Shown piece after piece: positions 432-63,966 of a stretch of DNA of 64,000 nucleotides. The notes beneath the pieces were generated by a model. It was not told where the DNA came from, searched no databases, and saw nothing but the letters and a program-made list of their open reading frames with translations. The DNA comes from Macrostomum lignano. Lineage: Eukaryota. Both the position numbers and the translations under genes were made by a program. The first letter of the stretch is position 1. Each line of letters starts with the position of its first letter. The DNA is taken from NCBI GenBank assembly GCA_002269645.1, contig NIVC01001300.1, forward strand, positions 248,001 through 312,000, written 5' to 3'.

Positions 432-825
432 AAAAAGCCGCCAGCAAAGCCGCCAAAGCCGGGGTCGAAGAAAAAGCAGCAACAACAACCGCCGGCTTTG
501 CCAATTCGAAACAAAAAACCACTGCAGACTACTGTAAGTATTTAAGTTATGAACTTACTATTATATATTTATATAATCAGTTTAATGCACGTTAATCCTA
601 CAGAAAAGTGTATTTATCAATTTTCATAGTAAGGCGTTTTCACAATTCTTTGAATTCCAGTCGCCTGGCACAAGTGAAGAGTCGGAGACTGTATATGACA
701 CCATTGAGAATGACAGCTCAGTACCAGCCCAACAGCCGCAGCCGCTGGGACAGCAGCAACAAACCAACGCTGCATTGCCTACCAAGATTGATGTGAACAG
801 TTTCGCAAAACTTGAAAAATTTTAA
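432..825 (+). CDS. Gene 0: last two coding exons of an upstream gene (cytoplasmic tail, partial)
   Basis: Exons 432-533 (ctcag|AAA...ACT|gtaagt) and 661-825 (ttccag|TCG...TAA), both phase 0. They read KKPPAKPPKPGSKKKQQQQPPALPIRNKKPLQTT-SPGTSEESETVYDTIEND...FAKLEKF*. The rest of the gene lies outside the window. Confidence 0.7.
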
Positions 826-1963
826 CAAAGACTTCTAGACGTGACAATACATGTACGATTATGCGAAAGTTGACTGTGCATTTTTAATCTAGATTCGAGA
901 CATAATGTACAGAATTACCCTGACTTGGCTATCACAACAATCTCCTTTAACAAGTTCAGTAGTTTAAAACGATAAACAGCAAAAACACAAAACTTCACAA
1001 ACTTATTATTTTGCATATTTACTCGTAGTAGCTATGCACCCCAGCCCTCCACGCACTTCTACCCAGCTCACCTCCTCCCCGATGCCGAAGCGCTGGCCTT
1101 GCATGGACCCCTGCATGGCCTGAAGTCCAGGAATATGGTCCCCGATACGGAAGAATTCCCGAACCCATGACTTGATGTTTGTGTCTTGAAAAATTGCCTT
1201 GTGGTGTAATTTGAAGTCAGCCATTGGGTGTTGTAGAAAAGTCTTCTCTACACGGACAGAAAATGACTTGGGTAGCTATGCCAAGCTATGCTTCAATACA
1301 CAGAACTTTTTAAACAACGAGAAATATTATAAAATCGATTAACGAAATCAATGCGAATTTTCGGTAAATTTACTTACTTGTTTATCTGTGATATTTTATC
1401 TAATTTATCTTCGTCAACCGAACGTAGTCATAGTGTCACTTAGTCACGCGACACATACAAGTACATATCGGAGAGTTGTTTGTGCTGAAACAAAAAATTA
1501 CTTGTTTTTAAGCAAATTTAAAATATTCTGCTTTTCATCTAAATGTGTATTCCTTAGATACCTAACATTAATTGTATATAGCATATTTTAAACGAAATAT
1601 TTAAATTTTTGTTAAAATAATTTGAACACCTCGTATTTTAAGCTCTGTTATTTTTTGTTCTTTGTTGAATTGTTGTTATAGGGTTACTTATACTAGTGTA
1701 ATACGTGTAAAGCGGCCTTAAATTTTTAGATTAGAAGTATTAGTGTTGCGCTTCTAATACTACTTATCAGATTAGCCTCATTAATTTTTATTATGAGAGC
1801 TCTTATAAGAAGTTTATTGCTATAAGGCAAATTTATTTAATTATTCCAGCTACCAGTACAATGTGAGCAGGGACTCACAGCTAGCAACCATCAGACCGCA
1901 AGCCGTCAAGCCAATGAAAAAGGTCATATGATATTAAAGAGATCGTTTTTGTATTTAAACGTC

Positions 1964-4900
1964 ATGTGGCACCTGCTGGTTTTATCAACTGTGTTGCTTG
2001 CGTTGGGTTCTTCCGCTGCAAAGACGACTGGCAGTAAGCTTCTTAAGCTTTGTTTTAATGCATACAAAATAAAACTATTTTACTTTATTCAGATTTTACG
2101 TATTTTTGGTTATTGGATATTTATACTAAGGTAATTTGTAGAATTTTTCAAGGGGTACTTTTAAGAGGTAAATAAGGCTTTTAGACTAGTAGTTAGAGAG
2201 TCGGACTCACGACTGCGAGGTCTGGGGTCGATTCTACCACTAGGAATAATTTGTGTCCTTGAGCAAGACACTTAACTTTGCATTGCTTCAGTTCACCCAG
2301 CTGTAAAATGGGTGCCAGCATTAGCTGGGGTAATTGAGGGTGTGTGTGGCGATCACCCAGTCCTGAACTGAACAGCCGTACGCAGCCTTCAGATGCGCCG
2401 CGCAATAGCTGCGGCTGAGCTGTCGGTTGCACATCTGCCCATTTAAGGGCCGGAGTAATAAAAATATATAACAACTTTTTATCTAAGTTGTACACGTATA
2501 GAACCTTTAATGAGGAGCTAAATTTTTATTCACTTTTAGTCATTTAAAAACACACACTTTTTCACAGGTTGCAAGTGTGAAAACGGTGGCCAGTGTCCCA
2601 CCTCTGCCGCAACCAAATGCAACTGTCATGCTGGTTACTATGGTAACCATATATTCGTCATTACTTTAAATAATGCGGTTTCAATCCATAAGAATCCACT
2701 GATTCGCCAAACCGACAATTTTTAGGCCAACGCTGCGAACTGGACGTTGCCGACTGCTCGCCAAATCCTTGCACCAAGGGAGGCCAAGGAACGCTCTGTC
2801 TGGAGCGGAGCAACCGGACTCTGTACGGCAGGTCCGATCTGCCCTGGCCTTTCAATGAAACTTTTAGTTATTCTGTGGCTCCTGGCTTTGTCTGCTGGTG
2901 TCCGACTGGTGCCAAGGCTTGCTCGGCTGGTTAGTAAAATTTTGTTTTGCTGCTTGTCTGTTGCACTTGAATGGCCTTGGATCACTCAGTCTTTTCTTCA
3001 TTCTACCAGGGAACGGGACTTTACCAGGATCTTTCATTAGGGCTTTAGCATCAGGGGCTTTAGCACCAGGGGCTTTAGCACCAGGGGCTTTAGCACCAGG
3101 GGCTTTAGCACCAGGGGCTTTAGCACCAGGGGCGCCAGCACCAGGGGCTTTAGCACCAGGGGCTTTAGCACCAGGGGCTTTAGCACCAGGGGCTTTAGCA
3201 CCAGGGGCTTTAGCACCAGGGGCGCCAGCACCAGGGGCGCCAGCACCAGGGGCGCCAGCACCAGGGGCACCAGCACCAGAAGCGCCAGCACCAGAGGCTT
3301 CAAGGGCTAGAATAATATGTAGGAATGATAAGTGGGAATAATATGTAGCTATCATTTTTAGGTTATATTGACCGTCAGATAACATTGCTAATGTTCACTA
3401 CACCATGGGAACGGGATGTTCCCCTGTCCATTTTTTGGTAAAACCTATGTTTTGAATTTCTATCAATTTTCAGAAATAAATTTATGACTGGTAAACTGCC
3501 GCAGTGCAAAAATTTGATATATAATAGCGTAGTTTATTTTGTATTTTCTAAGAGGGTTGACCAAAAACATATGATATCCCTATAGTCAATGCATTGCGCC
3601 AACTTGGGTGGCAGGTTTTGATATCGGCTGTCGAGATTTCATGCAGTGTCAGTCAGAGTGACAGGCATTTAAATAAGGAGAGAAAGGTTTCAGCTTGGGT
3701 TTCAGAGGTGTCAGAGCGTCTTATTAGGTACTGGGGTATCTGATTATGTATCGGGTTGGCTAGTTGGGTATTGGAGTGTCTAACTGGGTATCGGAGTATC
3801 TAATTGGGTATCGGAGTATCTAATTGGGTATCGGGGTGTCTAATTTGGTATCGGGGTGTCTAATTGGGTATAGAGGTGTTGAAATGTTTGACAAAGGGTT
3901 GAACACGATGTCAGAGTGTCATATTGGGCGCCCTCTAAGTGTCAGGGTATCATATTGTGATGTCAGGTTGTCAAAGAACTTCAAAAAAGTTATTTATGAG
4001 TTTATCACCGTACAAGTCACTGATTGGACATGTTATTCATGCATGTACTTACAAAATAATAAAACAAACAGCTACTGGGAGTTCTCAATTTCACAAATCA
4101 ACTGCACTTGTCAGACATGCGGCGGTACCCCGAGATCAAACCGCCAGACTCTGACACTGGCATCTCTAGCGCTGTCACCATTGTGCTTGGTGTCGCTCTT
4201 GGAGCACTGCTCATCGTGGTGCTGTCGGTTGTGGCGCCTGCCGTCTTCACTGCGGTCTATCGAACTGTGAGAAGATTATAAAAGATTCCTACTTTTCTTA
4301 GCGCTTTCATAAGACCTAAATTTCGAAATGCCTAAAATAGTTTTTTTTATTTACCGGCTAATTTTTTTGCCGTTGTGGAAAGTAATTTTTTTATTTACAA
4401 GTCTCAACACCGACTGGTGAAGTTTAGGCATTGCAAAATTTAGTTACTATGATGAGGTTTAGCTGTTATGAAGTTCAGGTGTTATAAAGTTTAGGTGTTA
4501 TGAAGTTTAGCTGTTATGAAGTTCAGGTGTTATAAAGTTTAGGTGTTATGAAGTTTAGCTGTTATGAAGTTCAGGTGTTATAAAGTTTAGCTGTTATGAA
4601 GTTCAGGTGTTATGATGTTCAGGTGTTATGAAGTTTAGCTGTTATGAAGTTCAGGTTTTTGTAAAGTTCAAGTTATATGAAATGTAGGTGTTATGAAGTT
4701 TAGGTTTTTTTTGAAGTTCAGGTGTTATTAAGATTAGGTGTTATGAAGTTCACGTATTATAAAGTTCACGTGTTATGAAGTTCACGTGTTATGAAGTTCA
4801 GGTATTATGAAGTTCAGATGTTACGAAGTTCAGATGTTATGAAGTTCAGGTGTTATGAAGTTCAGATGTTACGAAGTTCAGATGTTATGAAGTTCAGGTG

Positions 4901-5503
4901 TTATGAAGTTTAGGTGTTATGAAGTTCACGTGCTGTGAAGTTCACGTGTTGTGAAGTTCAGGTGTTATGAAGTTCAGGTGTTGTGAAGTTCAGGTGTTAT
5001 GAAGTTCAGGTGTTATGAAGTTCAGGTGTTGTGAAGTTCAGGTGTTATGAAGTTCAGGTGTTATGAAGTTCAGGTGTTGTGAAGTTCACGTGTTATGATG
5101 TTCACGTGTTATGAAGTTCAGGTGTTGTGAAGTTCACGTGTTGTGAATATCAGGTGTTATGAAGTTCAGGTGTTGTGAAGTTCACGTGTTATGAAATCCA
5201 CGTGTTGTAAAGTTCACGTGTTGTGAAGTTCAGGTGTTATGAAGTTCACGTGTTATGAAGATCAGGTGCTATGAAGTTTAGGTCATGTAATTTTAGGCGT
5301 ATTAAAAGTGAATGCATGAACTTTTAGGCAATCGCTAACCTGAAACGAAGTGCTCACTGTATCATTAAGCATATAATTTTTGCCTGACAAAAGCACAAAA
5401 AAGCTATACTGAACTAACTTTTCGTTTTTTTCTAAATTTTCAGGGTCAACTGCCGTGCTGCTGCAAGTCCAGGCGACCAAGTTCAGAATTGGAATATTTT
5501 TAG
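1964..5503 (+). CDS. Gene A: small EGF-TM receptor with a Crumbs-type EGF (~179 aa)
   Basis: join(1964-2033,2568-2642,2726-2908,4115-4266,5444-5503) = 540 nt with consistent phases. Signal peptide MWHLLVLSTVLLALGSSA; EGF CKCENGGQC..CNCHAGYYGQRC; Crumbs-type EGF CLERSNRTLY..FSYSVAPGFVCWC; TM AVTIVLGVALGALLIVVLSVVAPAVFTAVY; tail GQLPCCCKSRRPSSELEYF*. The exon-3 donor (gtgcca) is weak and the exon-4 acceptor is uncertain. Confidence 0.7.
2176..2465 (+). mobile_element. tRNA-derived SINE with CORE-like central domain
   Basis: B-box-like GGGTCGATTCT (~2226) followed by GTGTCCTTGAGCAAGACACTTAAC...CAGTTCACCCAGCTGTAAAATGGG, resembling the MIR/CORE SINE core; A/T-rich end. Lies in gene A intron 1. 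Confidence 0.65.
3040..3300. repeat. 15-bp VNTR (GCACCAGGGGCTTTA / GCACCAGGGGCGCCA)
   Basis: About 17 tandem units in gene A intron 3; same unit as 50390-51830. Confidence 0.95.
3740..3870. repeat. 20-bp tandem repeat (TAATTGGGTATCGGAGTATC)
   Basis: About 5-6 degenerate copies visible. Confidence 0.8.
4450..5285. repeat. 16-bp minisatellite (AGGTGTTATGAAGTTC)
   Basis: About 50 tandem copies in gene A intron 4; a decayed remnant occurs at ~41930-42000. Confidence 0.95.
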
Positions 5504-6028
5504 TTTATAAAAAAACATAAAATCCAGCTTTTTACTTAACTATAAAACTTCATACTTGTAAAAGCCTTACCTGACTACTCGCAAGCTCTGTAAGTAGTGT
5601 AAGTAGAGGTCAAAGTGCAAAATTGTTAAAAAAAGATTTTAGACCTCAAAATTGGAAAATTTCAGCTCAAAACAGCTAATCGTCGCTAACAAAAGTCAAT
5701 GCTTTTTATTGTGCATTTTTTATTTGCAGTAGTTAGACAATTCAATGCATTTTATTGTTGAAATATTTGAAATTTTCTTGAGCCCCAGTCAGCTGCTTGA
5801 AATGAAAATATACCTGCGACTGATTTTAATTACTTTTATTTTTTATTAACCAGTATGGCAAATCTGATTCTTATTTCAATATTCATTATCTCATAAGTAG
5901 CATATTCAGCACAGCTATACTCATTTCTTCTATTTCAATGGATTCAAATTTGATTCAATTTGATTGCATGCTGCTCAAACTTGTGCGAGTTTCAAACTAG
6001 ATAAGCCTCAGCTCTGAGCTCGTCCGGA

Positions 6029-38378
<32,350 letters not shown>

Positions 38379-39679: not shown

Positions 39680-40010
39680 AACGACTTAAAGGACGCACCA
39701 ACGCCGTGTTCGAGGACTTCCGGTTATCTCGAACTGCTAGCAGCGAGCCCGGACTCCATCGTCTTTGACAGGAGCAATCAGGCCTGGCAAGCGGCGCACC
39801 TGCTCAGGAACGTTTTTAAATTCAGCTGCGAGGGACGGCCCTGAAGGTGCGCCTCTTCAGTGCGGCCGTAAAGCCAATCCTTTAGCATGGCATGAAAGCG
39901 GTGCCGATGACCGACACGCGAGAGCGAGCCCTGGACGCGCGGGCTACATGTCCCTGCTGCGCTACGCCCTGGGCATGCACAACCCCGAGAGGCTGCCTTT
40001 CAGAACGCCG
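39680..40010 (+). mobile_element. Degenerate RTE-like LINE RT fragment
   Basis: Broken frames read AWQAAHLLRNVF..LKVRLFSAAVKPIL..ERALD..YMSLLRYALG, resembling non-LTR RT C-terminal motifs. Confidence 0.55.
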
Positions 40011-40049
40011 GCCTACAGAGGGACGTCGAGCAGTTTGTGCACCAGTGTT

Positions 40050-40480
40050 CCGTCTGTAATCGACTGCCTGCAGCCACGTAGGCCTATTGAAAATGAGGAA
40101 TCATTGGCCACCCGCATCAAAAGACCATTGAGAGGGTCCACATTGACTGGGTATTCGTACAAGAAGCAATAGATCTACTTGTTGGACAGGTCCGCAGCCA
40201 ATTTAGTGAAATTCTTGAGAACAGTTTTCACTTGGTTTGGTGTACCAGAGCTCGTAGTTTCTAACAATGGGGGCAAGAGTTCACATCTGAAACCCTGCTA
40301 TCCGGGCTTTGGACTATTGGAGCGCAAAAATGGAAACAGCCCCTTACTCGCCGCAGTCGAATGGCACAGCTGAAAGAGCCGTTCAGACTGTAAAAAGAGC
40401 TTTGCAAGCTTGAACCCCGCGACTAACCCACTCCGATTTCAACGCCTTTCTGCAGAAAGTCCTTCTCTACCACCGCAATT
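40050..40480 (+). mobile_element. Degenerate Gypsy integrase fragment
   Basis: LRTVFTWFGVPELVVSNNG resembles the integrase core (..FGxPExxVSDNG). Confidence 0.55.
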
Positions 40481-40539
40481 CATCCAACTCGCGTGGTGCG
40501 ACGCCTGCTGAACTGGTCTCTGGTCGTCGGCTGCGCGTC

Positions 40540-43422: not shown

Positions 43423-43457
<35 letters not shown>

Positions 43458-46400: not shown

Positions 46401-49400
46401 ACATTCCAGGACAGTCCATACCGCCTGTAGGACATGGGACATTCCAGGACAGTCCATACCGCCTGTAGGACATGGGACATTCCAGGACAGTCCATACCGC
46501 CTGTAGGACATAGCAAATTACTATCTTTACAATCGTCGAAAGCATCCGGATTTTAGCCGATGTAGGCGAGCCTGTCCCGAGTAAAGGTGGGGCAGCCATA
46601 GATGAAAGACTCCACATTCTCACCACCTGAAAGGCAGAATTGGTATTTCTCACTGCGGATTTTCCTGTAGGTAGCATTGCTTACTAAATCAGCCATGACT
46701 CCCAAAAGGGTCACTATGGCTACCGCTCTGATACTCCTGATAAAAGTCATGGGCGTCTCGTTGCCACCCACTGTTGAATCCAAGTGATAACAATAAGCAG
46801 CAATCTTGTTAAATGCCTAACGAATGCTTGTACTTTTAATTAAAAAAAACTAGGCAGACACTGCGAAATCAACATCAACAACTGCGCAAGTCACCCATGT
46901 ATAAACGGGCTGTGCTCAGACTTGGTGAATGACTACAGCTGCAGCTGCTACCGAGGCTGGCAAGGCAGGAACTGCAACGTCGATCACAATAACTGTTTCT
47001 ACGGCGCCTGTCTCAATGACGGCCGCTGTCTTGATGGCAATGAAACGTAGGTGAACAGATATGCTCATAAAATTAATTTATCGATATAATTTTTCTAAGG
47101 TTCTTTTTGCACATAGGCTTTCTAAATTTTGCAACATTTACCATTACTCTGATGGTTGCAACAAATAACTGCAGATACAGTCAAAGCTTTCTTAAACCTA
47201 CAAAAAATATACCGAAATGTGTGTATCCTCGACAGATTCACCTGCAACTGTTCTGACACGGGATTCAATGGCTCCAGATGCGAGGTCAACATTGATGACT
47301 GCGCCAGCAAGCCCTGCGCCAACGGCCTGTGCACGGACCTGGTGAAAGACTACAGCTGCAGCTGCTTCACAGGCTGGGAGGGCAAGAACTGTTCAGTGGA
47401 CACCGACTACTGCCTGTCAGGGCCCTGTCAGAACGGTGGCGTCTGCAGCGACGGAAACTCCACGTGAGTGGCTCTGAGCATATCTAGGAATTATAATTAC
47501 ATTAGATTTTTTTAATTTTAGCGTAATATAAAGTGCTAAAATGTTGAAAAAATGTTTCTTTACTTGAAAAGTAGATGAACAAAGCCTTATGTTTTCCAAC
47601 GCCACACAGTAAAAAAAGCTACAACTTTTGCAGAGCTACTACAGATTTCTTAGCCTCCCCTGCTGCAATTATTGATTCATTTTATGCAACAAAAATGCTG
47701 CAGATTTAGCTGCGATTGCACCAGCATCGACTTTCAAGACTCAACCTGTAGCTCGTGGATTGATAACTGTCTGTCAAGTCCCTGTCAGAACGAAGGGAAG
47801 TGTATCGATGAAGTCAGAAATTACACCTGCGACTGCACAGATACAGGGTTTACTGGGGACTGGTGTGAGAACAAAATAAATGAGTGTTATGACCAGCCCT
47901 GCATCAATGGCCTTTGCATTGACCTGGTGCAAAACTACAGCTGCACCTGCTTCACAGGCTGGGAGGGCACAAACTGCTCCGTAGATACGGACTACTGCCT
48001 GTCAAAGCCCTGCCGGAATGGCGGCGTCTGTAAGGACGGAAACTCAACGTAAGTTGCGTGATTCTAGTTGGTACAAAACCAAACTGTAACCAAAATGTAT
48101 TTGTAGCTAACTGGTTTCAAAACTTACAGATACACCTGTGACTGCTCTCGCGTTGACTTCCAAGGCGACACCTGCAGTTCCAAGATCGAGGACTGCGCGT
48201 CGAGCCCGTGCCAGCACGGCGGCGGGTGCACCGATGGTGTCAGGAGTTTCACCTGCGACTGCCTGCCCGGCTACGAGGGCCCGACCTGCTCAGTCGACAT
48301 CAACGAGTGCGAGCGGTTCGGACAGCCGTGTCAGAACGGAGACGTCTGCAAGGACCTGGTAGCGGATTATGCCTGCACCGGCTGCCCCGCTCACTTCGGA
48401 GGCAAAAACTGCTCCGTGCTGCTTCCACAGTACTCGTTCGGCATAAGCGGACTTGTATCGTCTGCGAGTTTCGCTTCTCTGCCAAATGCGTCAAGTGTGT
48501 CTGGCGGAGACTCGTGGACGATTGAGCTGAGGCTGGTGACTTTGTCTCGAGGAGCGTTTCTGCTGCTGCTGGGCGACCCGAGCGACTCGGCGACCACTCC
48601 GAGACTGCTCGCTACGGTCAGTGTCCTTAATGGTTCTTTTTTCTGGATTTAGTGCGATCTTTCAGTTTGTTAAAATCTTTTCAGATCGATCGTTCTGGCC
48701 GTCTGTCCGCCCAGTTACTGCACAGCAACGGCTCCGATATCGCAGCGCTGACGTCCTCAGACTCGGTGGCTACCGGCAGCTTCGTCTCCGTGAAGATCTC
48801 TGTGTCTATATCGGGTCGCTCGCTGTCGCTGTCAGTGTCATCTTCAGTCAGGTCGGCATCGCTGAGCAGTGCGAGTCCGCTGCCGCAGCTGTCAGGCCAG
48901 CTCATCATCGGCGGTTTTAACGGTGCCACGGCAGCATCGGCTCCGCCTTTGAGCCGCAATGACAGATCAAGAAGATCCGTTTGGGATCCTAATTTATCTT
49001 CATCTGTAGCCAATGTTACTGCATTTCGAGGTATTATTGGCTCGACCAGGATCAATGGAATCACAGCTTTACTTCTCAGCTCCCCAGCAGCAACGCTACA
49101 AGAAAGTTTTCCTGGAGCAATTAAACCGAGCGGCTCAACAAATGTGGTTCTTGGAAAACTGGCCGAAAAAGTCTGCGAGCGTTTCAAGCCTTGTGAGAAC
49201 GGAGCGACGTGTCACGATATTTTCTACAACAATTTTGTGTAAGTTCGCTGGTGTTGCCTTTCTGCATGTTTCGATCGTGAATAAAGTATATGGCTGAGTA
49301 ACCCACTGGTACGAGCTACATACATGTACTCCCAACTTTTAGCTGCGAATGTCATTCGGGCTACCACGGCAAGGACTGCTCCAAGGACATTCCGGACTGC

Positions 49401-52400
49401 GACCTCAATCCTTGCGGAGAAGGTTTCTGCTGTTTCGAAAAAAGCAACGCCTCATTGTACAACAGTTCGGACCTTCCATCGCCCTTCAACAGTTCGTTTA
49501 GCTTTTCGCGTGCGTCCGGCTCTGTGTGTTTACCTGGCTGTGAAGAATCACGATTCACAAGTACGCCTTTTTCTGCATGAGCCATTGCATGCTATTATCT
49601 CATTTCTATTTTTGTATAGCAGTTTTGCAAACCCAAGCCATGTCCCTTACAAATAGGCTCTTCTCTCTAACTGCTTTCTCCTGCTCTTGTCTTTATTCTT
49701 CAACCATAATGAACGACTGAATTTAGTCTCAGAAAAGTAGTATAATGCCTAACCCTCTTCTCTGCTTTTGTCTTACTGCATTACTGACTTCTTACTGCCT
49801 AAACACAGTCCAATGATTGTTGTTTATCATTATGTTGCACTGTGGTGGTACCTTCTTAGTGTGCCTTTGAAACAGTAAACAGGCAGAGGGTAAACTTGTT
49901 TTTCTTGAGAAATTCGGGCGAGTCATTTGCCAGAAAAGCTTGATTCGCAATACGATATTGTTTAAAATAATTATTCACAAATGTTTAGTATGCTATGTAC
50001 GTGTAGATTTCACACCTATCAGAACTTTATTAGTCCATATACAAATTTCTTGCACAAACTTTATTATCCCATGCACAATTTTGAGCGATGAATCATTTTT
50101 ATATTAATTTCAGTACTGTCTCCCACTCTATTTTTCACTCCTTACAAGGTTCAGCCGCGACGCAAGTGACGGAAGGCTCACTATCTGCATTGAAAGACGT
50201 ATATATCGCCACCTCAGCAATTTTTTCTATATCTGCTGTCCTCGCGTCGTTGTTCGCATGGCCTAAATTAAAAAATCGGTGTTGGAATAAAAATGTTAGC
50301 AAAGATTTTATTTTATGTTTTTTTACGATTTCCAATGAGCCACTCGAAACTGTGAACTTCGATTGATGGGGCTGGATTTTAGCGAGTCTTTATCACCAGG
50401 GGCTTTAGCACCAGGTGCTTTAGCACCAGGGGCTTTAGCACCAGGGGCTTTAGCACCAGGGGCGCAAGCACCAGGGGCGCAAGCACCAGGGGCGCAAGCA
50501 CCAGGGGCGCAAGCACCAGGGGCGCAAGCACCAGGGGCGCAAGCACCAGGGGCGCAAGCACCAGGGGCTTTAGCACCAGGGGCTTTAGCACCAGGGGCGC
50601 AAGCACCAGGGGCGCAAGCACCAGGGGCGCAAGCACCAGGGGCGCAAGCACCAGGGGCGCAAGCACCAGGGGCGCAAGCACCAGGGGCGCAAGCACCAGG
50701 GGCGCAAGCACCAGGGGCGCCAGCACCAGGGGCGCCAGCACCAGGGGCGCCAGCACCAGGGGCTTTAGCACCAGGGGCGCCAGCACCAGGGGCTTTAGCA
50801 CCAGGGGCTTTAGCACCAGGGGCTTTAGCACCAGGGGCTTTAGCACCAGGGGCTTTAGCACCAGGGGCTTTAGCACCAGGGGCTTTAGCACCAGGGGCTT
50901 TAGCACCAGGGGCTTTAGCACCAGGGGCTTTAGCACCAGGGGCTTTAGCACCAGGGGCTTTAGCACCAGGGGCTTTAGCACCAGGGGCTTTAGCACCAGG
51001 GGCGCCAGCACCAGGGGCTTTAGCACCAGGGGCTTTAGCACCAGGGGCTGTAGCACCAGGGGCTTTAGCACCAGGGGCTTTAGCACCAGGGGCTTTAGCA
51101 CCAGGGGCTTTAGCACCAGGGGCTTTAGCACCAGGGGCGCAAGCACCAGGGGCGCAAGCACCAGGGGCGCAAGCACCAGGGGCGCAAGCACCAGGGGCGC
51201 AAGCACCAGGGGCGCAAGCACCAGGGGCGCAAGCACCAGGGGCGCCAGCACCAGGGGCGCCAGCACCAGGGGCGCCAGCACCAGGGGCGCCAGCACCAGG
51301 GGCGCCAGCACCAGGGGCGCCAGCACCAGGGGCGCCAGCACCAGGGGCGCCAGCACCAGGGGCGCCAGCACCAGGGGCGCCAGCACCAGGGGCGCCAGCA
51401 CCAGGGGCGCCAGCACCAGGGGCGCCAGCACCAGGGGCGCCAGCACCAGGGGCGCCAGCACCAGGGGCGCCAGCACCAGGGGCGCCAGCACCAGGGGCTT
51501 TAGCACCAGGGGCGCCAGCACCAGGGGCGCCAGCACCAAGGGCGCCAGCACCAGGGGCGCCAGCACCAGGGGCGCCAGCACCAGGGGCGCCAGCACCAGG
51601 GGCGCCAGCACCAGGGGCGCCAGCACCAGGGGCGCCAGCACCAGGGGCGCCAGCACCAGGGGCGCCAGCACCAGGGGCGCCAGCACCAGGGGCGCCAGCA
51701 CCAGGGGCGCCAGCACCAGGGGCGCCAGCACCAGGGGCGCCAGCACCAGGGGCGCCAGCACCAGGGGCGCCAGCACCAGGGGCGCCAGCACCAGGGGCGC
51801 CAGCACCAGGGGCGCCAGCACCAGGGGCGCCATTGCCAAAGTAATTGTTGGGGAACGCTAAAATGGGTAACAGTGGCGCCACGGTTGCTGGAAAAAGGGC
51901 GCAAATATTTCAGCCTGGCAACGTCCCTCTCTCTCTCATTCGCTCTTATATCAGTAGTCAGCATTATTCTAATGAATTTTAACCACATGGCGTTGTTTCC
52001 TTTAATGTTTTATTATATGACAGAGACCGGTGGAGGCGGGGCGCACAGCACCCGTGGCAACTGAGTTAGGCAGACTGCCTGATTCAACTTATGCGGTTGC
52101 TGACCGACAACACGTATGACTTCCGCTCAATGTGCTGTTATTTTATTGATAAAAAATTATTGTAGCGTTCATTGAATACTTTATGAATTTATAATCCGTT
52201 TCCTACACAGGAAAGTACAATTGTCACCGGAGAATATGACTATATCGGATCGTCTGGACAAAATGTTAGTGACATTTGCTTATTCTTTAACAGTATTGAG
52301 TCATTTGCAAAGAATACATAAGCAAACTAAACGAACGATACACGCTTAATTCACTAGGTGGCCGATATAGTTCAGACTCCTGCTGAAGCAGCGACAAACA

Positions 52401-52588
52401 GCGGTTGGCAAGATGATTCACAGCCGGGTCAACAGGCGCCAAAACCGAGGCCCAGAGTGGAGCTATTTAACCCTGATGGGGAAGCTAGCGCTGAATCATA
52501 TGCGAAACTGGATATCGTGTATGTGGATATCAAAGGCACAAATAATGCGGAAGAATTACCCCAAAATTCAGTGAGCAGAGATGATTAA
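41716..52588 (+). CDS. Gene C: rearranged Crumbs-like receptor (13 EGF, 1 LamG, TM, Tyr-motif tail; ~952 aa)
   Basis: join(41716-41830,42107-42394,46854-47046,47236-47463,47704-48048,48130-48616,48685-49238,49343-49560,50149-50294,52211-52264,52358-52588) = 2859 nt with consistent phases. The start could instead be ATG 41770. TM is [21 protein letters not shown]. The 3' exon chain is less certain than the EGF exons. Confidence 0.75.
42467..44696. mobile_element. 2.2-kb non-coding insertion, solo-LTR-like
   Basis: Termini TGATGTAACC...GGTTACATCA (10-bp inverted), 4-bp TSD CTTT at 42463-42466 and 44697-44700, no coding domains, internal (GA)n at ~43428. Confidence 0.7.
45916..46099 (+). CDS. 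Alternative first coding exon (signal peptide + 1 EGF) for gene C, or start of a separate gene
   Basis: ttgcag|GTG ATT TGC ATG(45925); [49 protein letters not shown]|gtaagt. The phase-1 end fits exon 46854. Confidence 0.7.
46180..46790 (-). mobile_element. 3' fragment of a LOA/R1-like LINE
   Basis: ORF 46553-46783 reads ..[31 protein letters not shown], a decayed version of the ORF2 C-terminal zinc-knuckle region seen at ~12480-12570. Confidence 0.55.
46303..46510. repeat. 38-bp perfect tandem repeat, ~5.5 copies
   Basis: CATACCGCCTGTAGGACATGGGACATTCCAGGACAGTC repeated with no spacers. Confidence 0.97.
50390..51830. repeat. 15-bp VNTR (GCACCAGGGGCNNNA), ~96 copies
   Basis: Blocks of the variants GCTTTA, GCGCAA and GCGCCA; located in the intron after the gene C TM exon. 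Confidence 0.98.
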
Positions 52589-52591
52589 ATA

Positions 52592-53543: not shown

Positions 53544-53617
53544 GGCACGACAGCCCAGTGGTCTGGCGCGGCACTCTTATGTGTCAGCGGCCCAGGCTCG
53601 ATTCCAAGTGCAGCCAC
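53544..53617 (+). mobile_element. tRNA-like SINE head
   Basis: A-box-like AGTGGTCTGG and B-box-like GGCTCGATTCC; does not fold into a clean cloverleaf by eye. Confidence 0.35.
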
Positions 53618-55189: not shown

Positions 55190-58100
55190 ATGATGTTTCT
55201 TTTCATTTCTTTGTCGACTACTTTCTCGTGTAAGTATGTTTAGATATGTTCTGATGTACACGCACCTCTGAATAAAAAATTGGCAGATTATTATCTAGTT
55301 CAGATAGACCTATTTCTTTTTTTTCAGCTGTATCATCTGTTCAAAAACTTAAGTCGTGCACATACAGTAGCTGCAAGAATGGAGGCTATTGCTGGCCACA
55401 CCCAACTGATACATCACCTCCTTGTGTGTGTCCTGAGCCGTATTCGGGCTCACATTGCACAGTTCGTATCAAATACTGTTCAACAGAACCATCTAAGTGC
55501 CAGAACGGAGGCACCTGCAGCAGCAAAGATTCCAGTCCCTGGTACAGCTGCAGCTGCGCTCCCGGATTCACCGGTGAGTCAATAGCTATTCAAACCTGTG
55601 TTTTTTTAAGTTTTGATTATAAAAACATCAGGTAATTGCGTGAGGAATGTCAGTCCTAGAATTTCAATCAAGCACTAGCCGACACAAATTTGGTAAGCTG
55701 TGGGATACCTGTCAGATTATTTCTAAACGGGGGCTTCATCTACATTACTGACCTATTATACGTATCGATTTTTCAGTGGTGGTGAACTACGAGTGTAGCT
55801 AAAACTGATGGTTACGTAGAATTTTCTTAAATAATCATTTACCTTTACGAAATCACGGGACGGTTACTCAGTTGCTTCACTACTGCTATAGTGGTGTAAT
55901 CGTGATTTCGAATTGGCAGAAGTTGTATTAATTATAATCTCAGGTTATTGCAACCACTTTTAGGACCCTAATAACTTGCTGACACAATAGGCAACGAAGG
56001 CTAACAAAATACTATACGAGCGTAGATTTTCGCGATAAGAAGACGGATGACGAGTGACCAGAGTCTTCCAGTCCAGTCCCTTTGTCGGGTATTAACTTTT
56101 ACTGTCGTTTAATTTTTGATAGTTGTTGACAGCGTATGGATAGCATTTTGTTAAAAATATTGAAATGAGAAGCCAGACTGCATTGGTGAAATAACTTGGA
56201 CGGTATCGCACAAACTTTAGTCAGCTAGCTAAGTTTTGGTATGTTGGCACTTGTGTTATTTCTGACCAATGTCAGCTTGCAGACTACGTGAATGTAATCC
56301 GACACGCCTATTTAACTGACATCTGGGCGCGTCTCATGTATACGGAATGAGTGTACATGATGCTCGACCAACAAGCCAATTTGTCACAAAAACCTCACAT
56401 TTTTTACATTGTTTTTTCATGGAATTGAACTCCAACACTAAAATTAAATGGGACTGTTTTGAAACTTAGCCATAGGGTGTCATAACATTGTAACATCACA
56501 AGACAAAACGAACTATTTTACCACATGACCTGAAATGACGTGCTATGAAAAATGAAAACTGGCATGAAATTAAGTATTAATGCATTGATATGCATCCGCT
56601 CCTAGAAAGCAAATTAATGTAAAGAACCTAGTAGGAAAGGAAAACAGCTTAATCATTAGAACACTATGCTACTCCTCCCTTGGTCCGGCAATAACCAGCA
56701 TTCGTTTGTAACCGAAATCACATGAGGTACAAAATAAATGAGAAGATTGTGCAGTTGAGAAGCAAACTTAATTCGCATGAAAAAGTATTTTACAGCAAAA
56801 TTATGCAAATTATATAAGCAGAGTTCACCTCAGTGAAAACACATAGCGTTCTAAAGTTACAAAAAAGAGAAAAAATTGTTGGAAAATCAGTACCAGCCTC
56901 TGAAATAAAATATTTAATTTGGTCCTGTTTTTGCTGGCTATTTTCCACTGCAGGTCAGAACTGCGAGACGAACATTGACGATTGCCAGCCGAACCCGTGC
57001 AAAAACGGAGCGACATGCATCGATGGCATCAACTCGTACAGCTGCAAGTGCTACGATGGATTTGACAGTACAGACTGCTCCAATGAAATAATTGATTGCA
57101 CGCCAAACAGGTGTCACAACCATGGCATCTGTTTAGAGCGCAGCAACAAATACCTCTACGAAAAGCCCTCACTTCCGCCGCCATTCAACGGCACCTTCAA
57201 CTACTCCCTAGCAGCTGGCTTTGTCTGCCAGTGTCCGAAAGGTGAGATTAAATTGATGAAGCATTACTGCCTTACTGCCAACAAATGCCTGCTGTAATAA
57301 TATTTCTAAAACTACAGACTATCGCGATGACTACAATGATAACTAATAGCGCAATCTAAATCTTAGGTAAATTATAAATCTGTTGACACGGACACCATGA
57401 ATTAAAATAGAGTCGATGTGTTAAACAAAAAAAAATTGCTTTCTTAAAATCTAGCAAAATTAAGACTTAAGTTGAGAAAAATAAAATTTTCAGACTAGAA
57501 ATTATTATTGTAATTTAAAATTCCTAAAAGCTGAAACGACCCAAATATTGTATTAACAAACTACAATCATTGTACCATTCGCTAAATCGCTAAATTATCA
57601 TCAATTTCGCTGCTGCAAAACGGCTCTGCATCCAACTTTATAGCATCGAATTTTGCATACTTTGCCTACGGTAATGCTTTTCCTTGAAAATCACAGAGTT
57701 TCATATATTTAGTCTGTTTAAACCCAAGATTTGGTCAGACTTTCAGCAAAAGGTCTTCGTAGATCACGTTAAATTATTGGCTTCTACTGAAAACTACCAA
57801 AGTAAAATATTTCAAAACCTCTTTTCTGTCGTATATGCTAATAAAAAAAAATTCACTAGTAAGCATAGAACACTCAAAAAATACTACGCTCGGAGCTAAT
57901 AAGAGGAAAGTTACACAAATCGGGGTCACTAATAGCTCTGCCAGCTATTACCACTTGCAAAATACTTTTTAACAGGAGCCTACGGAGACACGTGCTCCAT
58001 CAACCCGAACGACTGTCTGAAACCGGACACCAACCGCAGCGTGTGCGCTCACGCGTCGAGCTGCACGGATGGCCTGGCCTCATTCACCTGCCACTGCCTG

Positions 58101-60321
58101 CCCGGCTACGAGGGCCCGACCTGCTCAGTCGACATCGACGAGTGCGAGCGAGTGCCTTGTCAGAATTCGGAGCCGTCTGCAAGGACCTGGTAGCGGATTA
58201 TGCCTGCACCGGCTGCCCCGCTGAGTTCGGAGGCAAAAACTGCAGCGTCAGACTGACTGGCTGCGACTCCAGCCCGTGCCAGAACAATGCTACTTGCGAG
58301 CCGCTGCTTCTTCAGGAGCTGCCGTCACCTGCTCACGGACATCGCTGCACCTGCAAGCCTGGCTGGTCTGGACCGCAGTGCAACGAGACCACTCTAGTTT
58401 CATTCAGCGGGACGTCCAGTTTCAGCGCCAATTTCACCACAACAGCTGACTGCACTTTCGAGCTGTCGTTCCGCACGACTCTCGCCCACTTCGACCTGGT
58501 CCGGCTCTCGTCTCACTGGGGAGACATCCGAGTCGGCGCTCACGACTCCAGTCTCGTGCTGTTGTTCTTCAATGCCTCATCGTCTGTGATTGGTCGAGTC
58601 GCTTGGCCAATCAGTGACAGCTTGGCCTCTGCTGATTGGCTGACGCTGTCGGTCTCGCTGACCAATGGCAGTGCGACATTGAGTCGCAGTGAGTCGGGAG
58701 TGAGTCAGCTGCCTCGAGCACAGCTGGTCGACGGTCTGTCGGACTCATTCAAGCCGAACAGTCGAATGTCGGTTCGTGTCGGCGGCGAGAGCGGATCCGG
58801 CATCGACGGCGGCGGCTTCCGCGGCTGCGTCAGAGACCTGCGGCTCGTGACGAACGACTCGACATTGGTAGCAACGGAGACCACGGCGGAGTCGAGCAAC
58901 GCGTCCTGGGGAGTCTGCAGTCGGTCGGTGCAGTGCGGCAGCCCGTCGCCTTGTGAAGTAAAGACGAGCTCGATGTGCTCAGATGTGTGGAATGACTTTG
59001 TGTGCCACTGCGCTGCGGACTTCGGAGGTCAAAACTGCTCTGTTGAGCTTCCATCGTTCTCACTGGGTGTGGGCGGCAGCGTGTCATCAGCGAGGTTCGC
59101 GTCTGCAGCAGGTGTGTCAAGTGTGTATGGCGGAGACTCGTGGACGATTGAGCTGAGGCTGGTGACTTTGTCTCGAGCAGCATTTCTGCTGCTGCTGGGC
59201 GACCCGAGCGACTTGGCGACCACTCCGAGACTGCTAGTTACGGTCAGTGTCCTTGTGGTGCTCCTCTGTAGATGTTCAAGGTGTTTTAAAGTCAGTTTTT
59301 GCTTTAAAATCTTTTCAGATCGATCACGATGGCCGTCTGTCCGCCCAGTTACTGCACGGCAACGGCTCCCTCATCGCAGGGCTGACGTCCCCAGACTCGG
59401 TGGCCAATGGAAGCTTCGTCTCAGTGAAGATCTCCGTGTCGATATCGGGTCGCTCACTGTCGCTGTCAGTGTCATCTTCAGTCAGGTCGGCATCGCTGAG
59501 CATTGCGAGTCCGCTGCCGCAGCTGTCAGGCCAGCTCATCATCGGCGGCTTCAGCGGCGCCAAGCCAGCTCCAGCTCCATCGTTTAATCCCAGCAGGCGA
59601 TCAAGACGATCGCTGGCGTCACTGCCAACTGCCGTTGCTCGGCTTCTTTCATCAAATATTTCTGCGTTTCGAGGTGTTATAGGCGCCACTAAAATTAATT
59701 CAGACCGGGCGTTGATCCTCAAACAAAACGATTCCAGTTGGACCGACAGGCTTCCAGCAGCCATTGTTGCCAGCAAGTCAGTAGGAGTCGCTTTATCTCT
59801 AAAGTTGAAACTCGTTGCGAGACTTCAAAATCTTGTCAGAATGACGCTACGTGTTGGAATTTTTTCTTTGTCACGTATAGGTAAGTTTATTAGCAATAGC
59901 TAATAAAATAGTCATTTATCATCGCACGTGAGTCCGAACTGTTGCAGGTGTGAGTGCGCAGCTGGGTGGCACGGTCCCACGTGTTCTGAGCCGGACTCTA
60001 TAACAAGGATTCAAAACAAGACTCACCGCCTAGAAGTGCGAGTGCCTTGATCGCAGGAATTGTTTCATCCACGATCATTATCATTGGCGCCTGCATTGGT
60101 GAGTCCGTTGTTTCACATAACTAACGAGCGAGGCTTCGTTATTCTGTTTAAATTCATTTTCACCTGCAGGTACTCTTGTTTTCCTGAAGCTCCGACGAGC
60201 TCACGAAGTGAAGCATCGAGGTCCGTGGGACAGATTCGACTTGAACGGCCCAACCGGTGTTCGAGTTGGACACCTGAGACCGGACGGAATGCCGCCGTGT
60301 CCACAGGAGGTGTTTTTCTGA
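55190..60321 (+). CDS. Gene D: Crumbs-like receptor (2 LamG, TM, PQEVFF tail) with three apparent frameshifts
   Basis: join(55190-55229,55328-55573,56954-57241,57976-59242,59319-59880,59948-60098,60170-60321). Frame breaks at ~58167, ~59795 and ~60000 may be a pseudogene or long-read indel errors. TM is [24 protein letters not shown]. The first exon is uncertain. Confidence 0.75.
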
Positions 60322-61130: not shown

Positions 61131-61490
61131 GCGCTCATTTTAGCGCCGCAGGCACTCATTTTAGTGCCGCAGGCACTCATTTTAGCGCCGCTGGCACTCA
61201 TTTTAGCGCCGCTGGCACTCATTTTAGCGCCGCTGGCACTCATTTTAGCGCCGCTGGCACTCATTTTAGCGCCGCTGGCACTCATTTAAGCGCCGCTGGC
61301 AGTCATTTTAGCGCCGCTGGCACTTATTTTAGCGCCGCTGGCACTCATTTTAGCGCCGCTGGCACTCATTTTAGCGCCGCTGGCACTTATTTTAGCGCCG
61401 CTGGCACTCATTTTAGCGCCGCTGGCACTCATTTTAGCGCCACTGGCACTCATTTTAGCGCCGCTGGCACTTATTTTAGCGCCGCTGGCA
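61131..61490. repeat. 21-bp minisatellite (GCACTCATTTTAGCGCCGCTG)
   Basis: About 17 copies. Confidence 0.95.
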
Positions 61491-63299
61491 CCATATTTAG
61501 ACACACTGAAGCAATTTTTTTTTTCAAAACGGGTCATGTGGATGCTGGGGACAAAACATTGGCCCCCTGGCCCCCTGTACCCCCCCCCTAACCGCCCTCC
61601 CCTTTCGGTGGCGACGCTCCTGAGCGTGAACGATCCTTAAAATGGAGAACAACTTAAACACCGGAATTGAGCCGGATCTTAAGGCTTGATTCCTTGCGAA
61701 GCTATGGAAGTGCTCCAAAATCGATGTCTCAAAGTTTTGAACTCTACTTGTTTCTGGACTATTTTTACTGATGATGTTAAGGGTATCTACAATAGTTGAT
61801 TAATTGCGTTGGAGTAAAGTGCATGTGTAGTAAAGATACGTGTACACGGGGCAAAAGCAACTCAGCGGTATAAACGTGCGCCTGACTCTGATGCCTTAGC
61901 CACCGCGGTTCTATCCCGTTATTATCGGATTAGAAAGACAGAACGGATGTACACTTTGTGTGTGTGTGCCTGTGTTCTGGCCGTCAGCGAGATGGTTGCC
62001 AGCAATGTCGCCAGGGCAAACCTGTAATTATTATCATGAAAGACTTATTATGAAGATTACTATACAGCCCAAAGTAAAACCCAATTGACTGTACAATGGA
62101 TGACTGCCCGCTCGGACTCCTTTTACCTTTTGCAGCTTAAGGAAGGGACTTGGATGCGATGCCTCAGTGTTTCTACTCAGTTTGGTCCGTAGCTTCACTT
62201 TAAGCTTCATTCTGGCGCTTGGTTGACACCCCTTTAAGCGATAGAAGTCAGTATAGTAGCCAGTGAGGTGACCACATGGGTTCATCTATTAGCTTGCTAC
62301 CGCATAAGGGCGCTGTCACAAATAGTGACACGAACTTGCACTACTAATTCGATGTGACGATGTGGCTGTCCAGGCTTCCAAATCTACGTCGTAAGTGTTT
62401 AATATGCTGTTACAACTTCTATATTTGATGAAGTTGACAAAGAATCTTGAATTCACAGTTTGGATAAGTTGATTTTGTCCACAAAAATTGATTCCGTAAT
62501 TATCAGTTGGTTCACATTGCTTCGGGGTCAATTGCAAGTACTGCTATCTTTCGACTGTGTTTTGAACTTTCATGAATTTTAATGCAGCATTTTTTATTGA
62601 GGATTTGATAAGATTCTCAATATCCTAAACGCAGCAGTGTTTTTTTCTACTTGCTTTTTTGCTTTCGCTAGACGTAAAGCAGCTTGAGCGCACTTGCGCA
62701 TACTTGACAAAAGAAAATGCGTAGGCGCATTTACGTGTTTTCTACTGGTGTACTCATGGTGCTAGTCATCTTTTTTCGTTGCCTTAATGTTCTATATGCT
62801 GAGCAAAGACATTGTTTGGGCTTTACGCCCATATATGCAGCCCTATTATATATATGAAAAACAAGTGGCTTCTCTGCTCTAGAAACAGTTCGTTTAAGTT
62901 TTGTAAACAAGCTATTTTTAGCAACAATAGAGAATCCAGGATTCTGCGAGTATAAGAAAATTGGCTACTTTATATGTATTGCTCAGTGAGCTGCATTATG
63001 CTATAAAGGTGTTTTTAAGAGTAAAAACAAACATTAATTTATTCTAAGAAGTCGAAAAGAGTTACTTAGACGCATCAACTTACGAGCGTAGCTTTTTACC
63101 GAAGTAAACCTTTTGATACCACCATCAATATGGCAAAAATGCGAGTCTACTCATGAACCTCTGCGACTTATTGGAAGAAGTTTTGTAGATTGCTAAGTAA
63201 CTTTTTAATAAATTCAAGATTTCTTTAAAGCGCAAAGGACATGAATAAGGTATTTTTTTAATCACAATGTCTTTTACTTTTGAGAGACTAGCAGACAAC

Positions 63300-63540
63300 A
63301 GTAGGGGCACCAGCCATAAGAGAGGGGCACCCACCGAGAGACAGGGGCGCCCACCAAGAGACAGTGGTGCCTACCAAGAGACAGTGGGCCTACCAAGGGT
63401 GCCCACCAAGAGACAAGGGTGCCCACCAAGAAACCGGGCCGGGTGTCTACCAAAGAGACAGTGGTAACTACCAAGAGACAAGGGTGCCAAACAAGAGACA
63501 GTGGCACCCACCAAGAGACAAGGGCGCCCACCAAGGTATG
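63300..63540. repeat. Degenerate ~19-bp repeat (GGGCGCCCACCAAGAGACA)
   Basis: About 11 imperfect copies. Confidence 0.75.
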
Positions 63541-63821
63541 AAATATTGGCATTTTTCAGGCTCTCTTCCATCAATACTTCTGCGTGCGCAACTGCTTCCT
63601 CCTGACTAAGCTAATGCCTCTTCTAGTAACTTATAATCACTTAATACCACCAGAAAACTTAGAAAAGACAAAGTACTGAAAATAACTAATAATTTACTTG
63701 CATTGTCCATGTTTGACGCTCATTTTACGTTGGTGATTTCACTCAGCTGTTCAGTTGTAGGTTCTATAAGTAGCTAGCTTCGAGTAAATCGTTTCTTCTG
63801 ACTCATACTACTCACCTGCAG

Positions 63822-63966
63822 TTCTTTGCAACGGTTTTGCTCGCAATCGCCTTCAATCCGCTCGTCTTTGCCAGAAGAGTAAAATGCGATTTGAAATGCA
63901 AAAATGGTGGAACATGTGAAAAACAGCAAGGTACAGACGTATGTACTTGCAGCCCTGGTTACAACG
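63822..63966 (+). CDS. Gene E: signal-peptide-like stretch + first EGF exon (partial)
   Basis: cctgcag|FFATVLLAIAFNPLVFARRVKCDLKCKNGGTCEKQQGTDVCTCSPGYNG|gtgagt, with the same phase-1 end as the first EGF exons of genes A-D. Confidence 0.7.

Follow-up and report, generated by a model that had tools for sequence, protein, structure and literature searches.

A lineage-specific crumbs expansion with domain loss and tail change in Macrostomum lignano

Work on Crumbs has treated it as a low-copy determinant of polarity, with a 37-residue cytoplasmic tail from which its function is read; its large ectodomain is poorly understood. The tail carries a juxtamembrane FERM-binding motif that includes a conserved tyrosine, Tyr10 (GTY), and animals usually have one to three crumbs genes, far fewer than Macrostomum lignano. 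The ectodomain consists of EGF-like repeats interspersed with laminin-G (LamG) domains, and the FERM-binding GTY and PDZ-binding ERLI motifs define the tail (PMC3564977). Here we describe a 64,000-nucleotide stretch of M. lignano DNA (contig NIVC01001300.1, positions 248,001 to 312,000; hereafter the window), in which six plus-strand genes, labeled 0, A, B, C, D and E, are arranged head-to-tail and encode EGF/LamG type I membrane proteins. The array is a real and hitherto undescribed lineage-specific expansion of crumbs, accompanied by domain loss and tail change. Nothing on this gene family was found in the literature that we searched (Crumbs in Platyhelminthes and Macrostomum, Mlig gene identifiers and Crumbs family expansions).

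Array layout and relation to Crumbs

The window is eukaryotic DNA rich in repeats, and the closest database proteins of its genes all come from M. lignano. Six-frame translation revealed EGF-type cysteine patterns on the plus strand only, with all EGF/LamG coding pieces located between 432 and 63980. Gene models were obtained by splice reconstruction using canonical GT-AG junctions, the choice among which was guided by homology to M. lignano proteins. Splice donors in the array are mostly GTGAGT or GTAAGT. The models are given below, where L005 (NIVC01001242.1) is a duplicated copy of the window locus.

432-533 and 661-825 (including the stop codon), plus strand: gene 0, last two coding exons; one difference in 88 amino acids from the C-terminus of BOX15_Mlig004956g1
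1928-5503, plus strand: gene A, 198 amino acids, no LamG, intact; splice reconstruction, five exons conserved in L005
1928-2033, plus strand: gene A, signal peptide exon
2568-2642, plus strand: gene A, EGF exon
2726-2929, plus strand: gene A, long Crumbs/EYS-type EGF exon
4115-4266, plus strand: gene A, membrane-spanning exon
5444-5503, plus strand: gene A, tail exon, GQLPCCCKSRRPSSELEYF and stop
6029-38378, plus strand: gene B, 1404 amino acids, 10 exons, three LamG, intact; splicing, Pfam, predicted folds and homology
6029-6125, 6193-6480, 10412-10604, 19348-19692, 30152-30597, plus strand: gene B, exons 1-5
33721-34991, 35815-36389, 36481-36602, 37124-37846, 38224-38378, plus strand: gene B, exons 6-10
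38224-38378, plus strand: gene B, tail exon, beginning inside the membrane-spanning segment (phase-1 intron); tail ends KPVPQEVFF
41770 to about 52588, plus strand: gene C, about 903 amino acids, one LamG; reading frame intact, last two exons tentative
41770-41830, 42107-42394, 46854-47046, 47236-47463, plus strand: gene C, firm exons 1-4
47704-48048, 48130-48616, 48685-49238, 49343 to about 49539, plus strand: gene C, firm exons 5-8
about 50149-50294, plus strand: gene C, tentative membrane-spanning exon
about 52376-52588, plus strand: gene C, tentative tail exon ending ...SRDD and stop
55190-60321, plus strand: gene D, conceptually about 898 amino acids, two LamG, EVFF-type tail; three frame breaks
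55190-55229, 55328-55573, 56954-57241, 57976-59242, 59319-59880, 59948-60098, 60170-60321, plus strand: gene D, exons
63774-63980, plus strand: gene E, represented by its first EGF exon, ...FARR/VKCDLKCKNGGTCEKQQGTDVCTCSPGYNGE, with the remainder beyond the window

An earlier sequence-only reading of this DNA had proposed four reconstructable genes and two partial neighbors. The reading frames of A, B and C are indeed intact, and their coding sequence together with the gene 0 exons (about 7.7 kb) contains no frame break; gene D, however, is broken and the 3' end of gene C is tentative. Both neighbors are real, gene 0 matching a GenBank protein and gene E having the first EGF exon typical of the family. 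In the products of A, B and D the N-terminus is hydrophobic and the membrane-spanning stretch is strong (Kyte-Doolittle 2.3-3.0). All close relatives that we found are M. lignano proteins, encoded at no fewer than four loci, as expected of the lineage-specific cluster suggested earlier.

Descent of the array genes from crumbs is strongly supported by sequence comparison. The last 430 residues of the gene B product, from the end of LamG2 to the C-terminus, are collinear with M. lignano protein A0A1I8G0Z2 (P0020) at 41% identity (BLASTP, E 1e-109). The alignment continues through the tail, where P0020 reads ...RRKESGTYGPSKAE...PPPEERLI; its C-terminal sequence, ...FKYVQNRRKESGTYGPSKAESRSNAHAQAQPPVRPPPEERLI, holds both GTY and ERLI. 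The junction between a truncated EGF and LamG3 is common to the two proteins, and in the P0020 gene, B and D alike a phase-1 intron splits the membrane-spanning segment six codons before the stop-transfer lysine. The P0020 gene resides on the minus strand of another locus, L001 (NIVC01000114.1), convergent with the intact D-type gene P0022 at a distance of 5.6 kb; P0024 and P0021 are on the same contig within about 200 kb. In an exhaustive phmmer search with B exon 9 (1.84 billion representatives) P0020 ranked second, behind the window's own product. The named matches extending over LamG3 in species outside Macrostomum are the Crumbs of Nematostella, Saccoglossus and the teleosts Gouania and Denticeps, and B LamG1 aligns with CRB1. 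The Crumbs derivation put forward in the sequence-only reading is thus borne out by the collinear match to an ERLI-tailed protein, the common intron and the Crumbs matches of LamG3.

ERLI-tailed crumbs genes exist elsewhere in the genome in at least two kinds, P0020 and P0175, the tail of the latter being ...GQYRPSKEE...PPTEERLI. P0175 and its sister models (P0035) are identical up to ...GQYRPSKEETNH and then end either in ...PPTEERLI or in ...NIVLGNMQVARL. The two ends may be alternative tails, or the models may come from different copies; the CRB3a and CRB3b isoforms offer a parallel.

It is very unlikely that the genes are not Crumbs relatives but belong to another EGF/LamG family (EYS, Notch/Delta, neurexin, agrin, 'Cubilin' or 'Delta-like'). 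Automatic UniProt names do include 'Delta-like' and 'Cubilin', searches of PDB by fold and by sequence returned neurexin, agrin and laminin LG domains with no Crumbs ectodomain among the matches listed, and an EYS fragment also appeared among the matches. Nevertheless, the nearest relative across the full domain is ERLI-tailed and comes from M. lignano itself; its gene has the same intron position and adjoins a sister array, and the named LamG-covering matches in other phyla are Crumbs. In addition, gene B encodes a membrane-spanning segment followed by a short tail, both absent from EYS and agrin, and Pfam detects no LNR or ankyrin parts of Notch. Membership in the Notch or EYS families was rejected on the basis of the ERLI-tailed homolog, the intron position and the Crumbs matches.

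The window genes depart from canonical Crumbs in their tails. GTY is present in no family tail of the window, and ERLI in none of the gene models: on the coding strand it occurs only outside the models, and the one match on the minus strand lies in a retrotransposon. Instead, the tails end in EVFF (B and D), EYF (A), EKF (gene 0) and, tentatively, RDD (C). Because both of the motifs that define a Crumbs tail are missing, the window genes are Crumbs paralogs rather than Crumbs proper, and we refer to them as Crumbs-like genes. The tail strings quoted in the sequence-only reading are present: ELEYF in A (at 5486) and GVRVGHLR...PQEVFF in B (38313-38375) and D (60256-60318). The view that the tails fall into three unrelated types had to be abandoned, since that of B and D is a diverged Crumbs tail. 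Apart from the collinear alignment, its exon coincides in position and phase with the tail exon of canonical Crumbs, and the C-terminal patterns are alike (RPPPEERLI and RPPTEERLI versus PPCPQEVFF). PQEVFF and TGVRVGHLR are invariant in at least five copies. Similarly, QLPCCCxSRRPxSxxEYF is conserved in four A-type copies, and the A-type tail exon is also conserved in loci L002 and L004, just upstream of B-like genes.

Genes 0 and C had been assigned tails with tyrosine and proline motifs. For gene 0 this holds. Its two exons encode the C-terminal part of a long cytoplasmic tail rich in tyrosine and proline, ...KPPKPGSKKKQQQQPPALPIRNKKPLQTT / SPGTSEESETVYDTIEND...NSFAKLEKF and stop, which differs at one of 88 positions from BOX15_Mlig004956g1 (P0184). 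The latter is a 651-residue protein whose only repeats are EGF; it contains no LamG, crosses the membrane once and carries a Tyr/Pro-rich tail of some 300 residues. The P0184 tail contains the strings YxxI, YxxM, the NPxY-like NPRY and PxxPxR. The tail of gene C is far less certain, as none of the proteins and loci searched contains a homolog of the gene's membrane-spanning and Tyr-tail exons. In gene C the hydrophobic stretch is weak (Kyte-Doolittle 1.95), and the Tyr-type tails of M. lignano paralogs P0002, P0021 and P0024 have no match in the window. In gene A the membrane-spanning segment lies within a single exon, and the tentative gene C model is laid out likewise.

Ectodomains, duplicated locus and selection

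Gene B encodes an ectodomain with three LamG domains. Its coding sequence runs for 4.2 kb without a stop and starts with a signal peptide, an RTRR site, about 13 EGF repeats (one of the long Crumbs/EYS type) and LamG1. These are followed by an EGF, LamG2, an EGF plus a truncated EGF, LamG3, another EGF, the membrane-spanning segment and a 45-residue tail; the protein has 15 CxC..C motifs. Pfam called only the LamG2-type domain, one LamG per protein, so that structure prediction was needed to establish LamG numbers. AlphaFold models of B LamG1 (built from eight aligned sequences including CRB1) and LamG3 had predicted local distance difference test (pLDDT) values of 66 and 61, and matched LG/LNS domains of neurexin, agrin, laminin and perlecan in PDB with a Foldseek probability of 1.0 (E 1e-9 and 3e-6, respectively). 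A PDB sequence search gave no match for LamG1, and the match for LamG3 was mainly due to the following EGF: the end of LamG3 and this EGF match the LNS-EGF junction of neurexin-1 alpha. Together, Pfam and the predicted structures uphold the earlier LamG counts of zero in A, three in B, one in C and two in D. Accordingly, a Crumbs-type ectodomain with EGF repeats interspersed with LamG is present in B, D and C, while A and gene 0 have EGF repeats only.

As the sequence-only reading had it, the genes are built from a common EGF/LamG exon kit: paralogous exons are 76-95% identical in a mosaic fashion and introns are unalignable. Comparison of the window with itself shows that B exon 6 is 94% identical to D over 1282 nucleotides, and that B and C match piecewise at 76-95%, again without alignable introns. 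Identity is uneven within genes, some exons reaching 94-96% and others 50-80%. The LamG1-LamG2 exon is 93-96% identical even between EVFF-tailed and Tyr-tailed genes. Gene C lacks residues 194-232 of B (an EGF) and 551-815 (EGF-LamG1-EGF), and in its exon 6 the beginning of B exon 5 is joined in frame to segments from the middle and from the end of B exon 6. Judging from these junctions, the structure of gene C looks like the result of deletion between similar EGF repeats and not of classical exon shuffling.

Directly before the first EGF there is an RxRR site of the proprotein-convertase type, ARTRR/AAC, in B (around 6215-6230) and C (around 42130-42145), and gene E has a site of the same type, FARR/VKC (around 63870-63880). 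Such a site is also found in P0001, P0184 and the ERLI-tailed P0175, and is absent from A and D. This distribution suggests a cleaved propeptide common to array genes and the canonical Crumbs of M. lignano. The linker between EGF1 and EGF2 (6330-6400 in B, 42245-42315 in C) is the most variable part of the otherwise conserved exon 2; in the duplicate of B it reads TNRIKYCQTDSGG, with a gap of six residues.

Gene D differs from the other genes in having three frame breaks. The first, at 58150-58170, is a -6/+2 change relative to B and C, and B, C and P0001 are intact there. The second and third are frame shifts on either side of the EGF that follows LamG2, one near 59790 on the LamG2 side and the other near 59990-60030, ahead of the membrane-spanning segment; neither position is disrupted in P0022 or P0023. 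A tiny intron skirting the first break was ruled out, as the only GT...AG pair spans 12 nucleotides. Since three breaks fall within 2.7 kb of D compared with none in about 7.7 kb elsewhere, assembly noise is an unlikely cause, and gene D is probably an unprocessed pseudogene.

In L005, the duplicate of the locus, window positions 1-11000 have a collinear counterpart at 83-93% DNA identity; genes 0, A and B follow each other there in this order and are annotated with 651, 186 and 1473 residues. The duplicate bears on the idea that uncollapsed haplotypes produced the array as an artefact of assembly, which we regard as extremely improbable. In support of such an artefact, published M. lignano assemblies are highly redundant: 180 Mb fall into non-repetitive blocks with at least 95% identity (PMC5730564). 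The genes of the window, however, differ in domain content and exon number; besides simple-sequence repeats only their exons align with each other, at up to 95% identity, and the 0-A-B order recurs in an independently assembled contig that is only 83-93% identical. Uncollapsed haplotypes were rejected for these three reasons.

All five exons of gene A are conserved in L005, where they fall under the annotated 186-residue gene, and the ratio of nonsynonymous to synonymous substitution rates (dN/dS) is 0.17 at a dS of 0.12. In the exon that contains LamG1, dN/dS came to 0.25-0.26 when B was compared with D and with the L001 copy, and other pairs gave 0.4-0.6; L004 was left out of the comparison, since a frame shift affects the beginning of its exon. 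Selection on the array genes is thus purifying to relaxed, with no overall sign of diversifying selection.

These values lend no support to the proposal of the sequence-only reading that the cluster diversifies like paired immune or recognition receptors; near-identical ectodomains with opposing tails would then be under diversifying selection and serve a self/non-self or adhesion code. Several observations do point in that direction. LamG1-LamG2 exons that are 93-96% identical are coupled to unlike tails (EVFF in B and in the gene upstream of P0022 on L001, Tyr-type in P0024), the tails of gene 0 and, tentatively, C contain strings that resemble immunoreceptor tyrosine-based switch or inhibitory motifs (ITSM/ITIM; TVYDTI and IVYVDI, respectively), and the linker between EGF1 and EGF2 is variable. 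However, whole-exon dN/dS is 0.17-0.6 and below one everywhere measured, and the membrane-spanning segments of A, B and D contain no Asp, Glu, Lys or Arg, giving no sign of coupling to adaptors with immunoreceptor tyrosine-based activation motifs; in paired families the activating, short-tailed members have such a charged residue and the inhibitory members have ITIMs. The ITIM-like strings themselves span four to six residues and are expected by chance in long Tyr-rich tails. We therefore consider receptor-like diversification of this kind quite unlikely.

Another view would be that the array consists mostly of dead duplicates, a by-product of a repeat-rich, recently duplicated genome with at most one working gene and with tails shaped by neutral decay. 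It draws on the three frame breaks of D, the roughly 15 kb of retroelements and satellites in the introns of B, the 3' end of C without a homolog and a genome more than half of which is repetitive and much of which is duplicated (PMC5730564). On the other hand, A, B and C have long intact open reading frames (4.2 kb in B), exons are conserved while introns are unalignable, dN/dS is as low as 0.17-0.26 (A; B against D) and tail ends are invariant across copies. The GenBank annotation of the assembly containing L005 was built from a genome-guided RNA-seq transcriptome (PMC5730564), and RNA-seq-based models of this kind cover four paralogs as well as the duplicates of genes 0, A and B. We thus find it improbable that the array is mostly dead. 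The intact frames of A, B and C, the conserved duplicate, the RNA-seq-based models and the low dN/dS all indicate that array genes are functional.

Repeats, mobile elements and public protein models

Retroelements and tandem arrays make up most of the 32-kb length of gene B. The repeats identified in the window are as follows.

12315-17659, minus strand: non-LTR retrotransposon (LTR, long terminal repeat) in B intron 3, outside the gene family; endonuclease, reverse transcriptase and RNase H frames open, 466-residue ORF1-like frame
21540-23528, minus strand: older LTR-type pol fragment in B intron 4, protease and reverse transcriptase
25029-28996, plus strand: near-complete LTR-type body in B intron 4; gag, protease, reverse transcriptase, RNase H and integrase
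50394-51832: 15-bp minisatellite CACCAGGGGCGCCAG, 96 copies, in the 3' part of C
3040-3300: shorter array of the same minisatellite in A intron 3
1-362: tandem array, 24-bp unit
4452-5283: tandem array, 16-bp unit
6984-7526: tandem array, 4-bp unit
8780-10175: tandem array, 21/42-bp unit
31053-32709: tandem array, 27-bp unit
46303-46511: tandem array, 38-bp unit
61134-61500: tandem array, 21-bp unit

The non-LTR retrotransposon, which looks young, sits inside a 25-bp satellite whose halves flank it at 11506-12218 and 18123-18439, and a third, more diverged array of this satellite is found at 24367-24733. The near-complete LTR-type element is bracketed by a 126-bp direct repeat with 99.2% identity (24729-24854 and 29023-29148), and the older fragment by repeats with 89% identity (20958-21178 and 23663-23873). 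The CACCAGGGGCGCCAG minisatellite is open in six frames and gives rise to spurious 'GAPGA' reading frames of about 500 residues; it is also present in L001 at 6694-7407 and 24632-25248. A 2.2-kb stretch in C intron 2 (42467-44696) matches the opposite strand of locus L003 at 94-99% identity and is presumably a recently active mobile element. Part of the array at 8780-10175 matches window positions 44913-45243 and L004. An Rfam scan of the window detected no RNA family.

Several public models of the family are wrongly fused or bear misleading names ('Cubilin', 'Delta-like', 'Clip domain'). A0A1I8JA97 (P0025, 'Cubilin') joins B exons 5-10, an intergenic reading frame at 39765-40172 and C exon 2; its amino acid identity to the window is 97-100% overall, 97-99% in the B part and 100% in C exon 2. 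Another mis-fused model, A0A1I8G256 (P0183, 'Clip domain'), combines a gene-0-type tail with an A-type EGF exon from a paralogous locus.

Proposed history and comparison with known systems

Taking these observations together, we consider it likely that the window contains six crumbs paralogs that arose by tandem duplication, domain loss and tail change and whose products are surface proteins. The anatomy of the locus suggests that the first step would have been tandem duplication of crumbs, which we propose because an ERLI-tailed crumbs still adjoins a sister array. In-frame deletions between similar EGF repeats may then have stripped blocks of domains: C would have lost EGF-LamG1-EGF together with the intron between B exons 5 and 6, D would have lost LamG3, and A and gene 0 all LamG domains. 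Sequence exchange between copies could have kept some exons 94-96% identical while others fell to 50-80%. Finally, the Crumbs tail exon of B and D appears to have diverged in place, with loss of GTY and a change of ERLI to EVFF, while A, gene 0 and probably C would have acquired different 3' exons in place of it.

The products would be type I surface proteins, whose Crumbs-type EGF/LamG ectodomains may bind partners on neighboring cells or in the matrix and whose tails may link to different intracellular adaptors. Since PQEVFF and TGVRVGHLR are invariant and EYF is conserved, the tail ends are presumably bound by something, PDZ domains being the obvious candidates. The invariant hydrophobic PQEVFF terminus of the B/D type resembles a class II PDZ ligand. 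The A type could be a mini-protein resembling CRB3, with a CCC suited to palmitoylation and EYF at its C-terminus, and the YxxI, YxxM, NPxY-like and PxxPxR strings in the long tail of the gene 0 type would suit SH2, PTB and SH3 adaptors. The polarity function would presumably be left to the ERLI-tailed genes elsewhere, with D decaying.

Several points weigh against this account. The RNA-seq support comes from the duplicated copy and the paralogs, not from this exact locus. The comparison with canonical Crumbs is limited to its C-terminal half, as P0020 is a partial model, and the vestige of the FERM-binding motif is weak, B having TLFRPS where P0020 has GTYGPS. The adaptor-binding roles of the tails rest on short motifs only, and one of the two Tyr-type tails of the window may be wrong, given the tentative 3' end of gene C. 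In addition, the broken gene D and the retroelement-packed introns of B indicate that some decay is under way.

A bolder extension of tandem duplication with domain loss and tail change is conceivable, although we consider it unlikely. The Macrostomum Crumbs ectodomain might have become a receptor family in which zero to three LamG domains combined with at least three tail classes (PDZ-type EVFF and EYF, and a phosphotyrosine/SH3 type) form a combinatorial recognition or adhesion code, with the ERLI genes keeping polarity. Sorting of tissues during regeneration could then be one setting for the code, and recognition of gametes or partners, the animal being a hermaphrodite, another.

The array is mainly of interest for the evolution of Crumbs and for the role of its ectodomain. 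It amounts to a natural experiment, in which the ectodomain was kept and trimmed stepwise and the tail was changed or replaced, with a canonical copy in the same genome. The family could therefore reveal what the Crumbs ectodomain does alone and could show how a PDZ-binding end drifts, from ERLI to EVFF, without gene loss. M. lignano is amenable to RNA interference, in situ hybridization and transgenesis.

Among known systems, paired immune receptors (KIR, LILR, SIRP and Ly49) resemble the array in being a clustered multigene family with similar ectodomains and different tails, and the analogy is supported no further. Unlike them, the window genes encode EGF/LamG rather than Ig or lectin folds, have no charged residue in the membrane-spanning segments of A, B and D, give no sign of diversifying selection in whole-exon dN/dS and have no link to immunity. 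Multi-EGF receptors with phosphotyrosine tails (Draper/CED-1, MEGF10 and PEAR1) are similar in outline to gene 0, and to C if its tail is right: EGF-only or EGF-rich single-pass proteins with a long tail containing NPxY-like and YxxI/L/M strings and a proline-rich stretch. The resemblance is one of architecture, with no sequence homology, and Pfam finds in the window genes no EMI domain, which engulfment receptors of the Draper/MEGF10 type combine with EGF repeats. EYS (eyes shut) has EGF and LamG repeats and the same type of long EGF, and an insect EYS fragment was among the matches, but it ranks below Crumbs for the window LamG domains; moreover, EYS is secreted and lacks both a membrane-spanning segment and a tail.

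The tails of neurexin, Caspr, syndecan and glycophorin C have a FERM-binding site and a hydrophobic PDZ-binding end (EYYV, EFYA, EYFI). Over three or four residues, the ...ELEYF of A and the ...QEVFF of B and D are hydrophobic aromatic ends of this kind, which may be recognized by PDZ domains of the p55/MAGUK and syntenin type; the LamG-to-EGF junction of B also resembles that of neurexin-1 alpha. CRB3, the short form of vertebrates and C. elegans, is comparable to gene A, which is small (198 residues), with a reduced ectodomain, one membrane-spanning segment and a tail of about 24 residues. CRB3 has no EGF modules, whereas gene A keeps two, and its tail is CCCKSRRPSSELEYF instead of GTY...ERLI. 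Its membrane-spanning segment is encoded in one exon, unlike in B, D and the ERLI-tailed gene. The closest system is Crumbs itself (Drosophila Crb; CRB1 and CRB2). Although the window genes have no GTY FERM-binding motif or ERLI end, and B and D end in PQEVFF and carry the family-specific TGVRVGHLR motif, they share with Crumbs the type I membrane topology and the many EGF repeats. They also share the long EGF with a ...CLERS..LY....F.Y...G..C.C insert, found in CRB1 and unnamed relatives, the short tail (45 residues in B compared with 37) and, in gene B, the order LamG-EGF-LamG-EGF-LamG-EGF-membrane.

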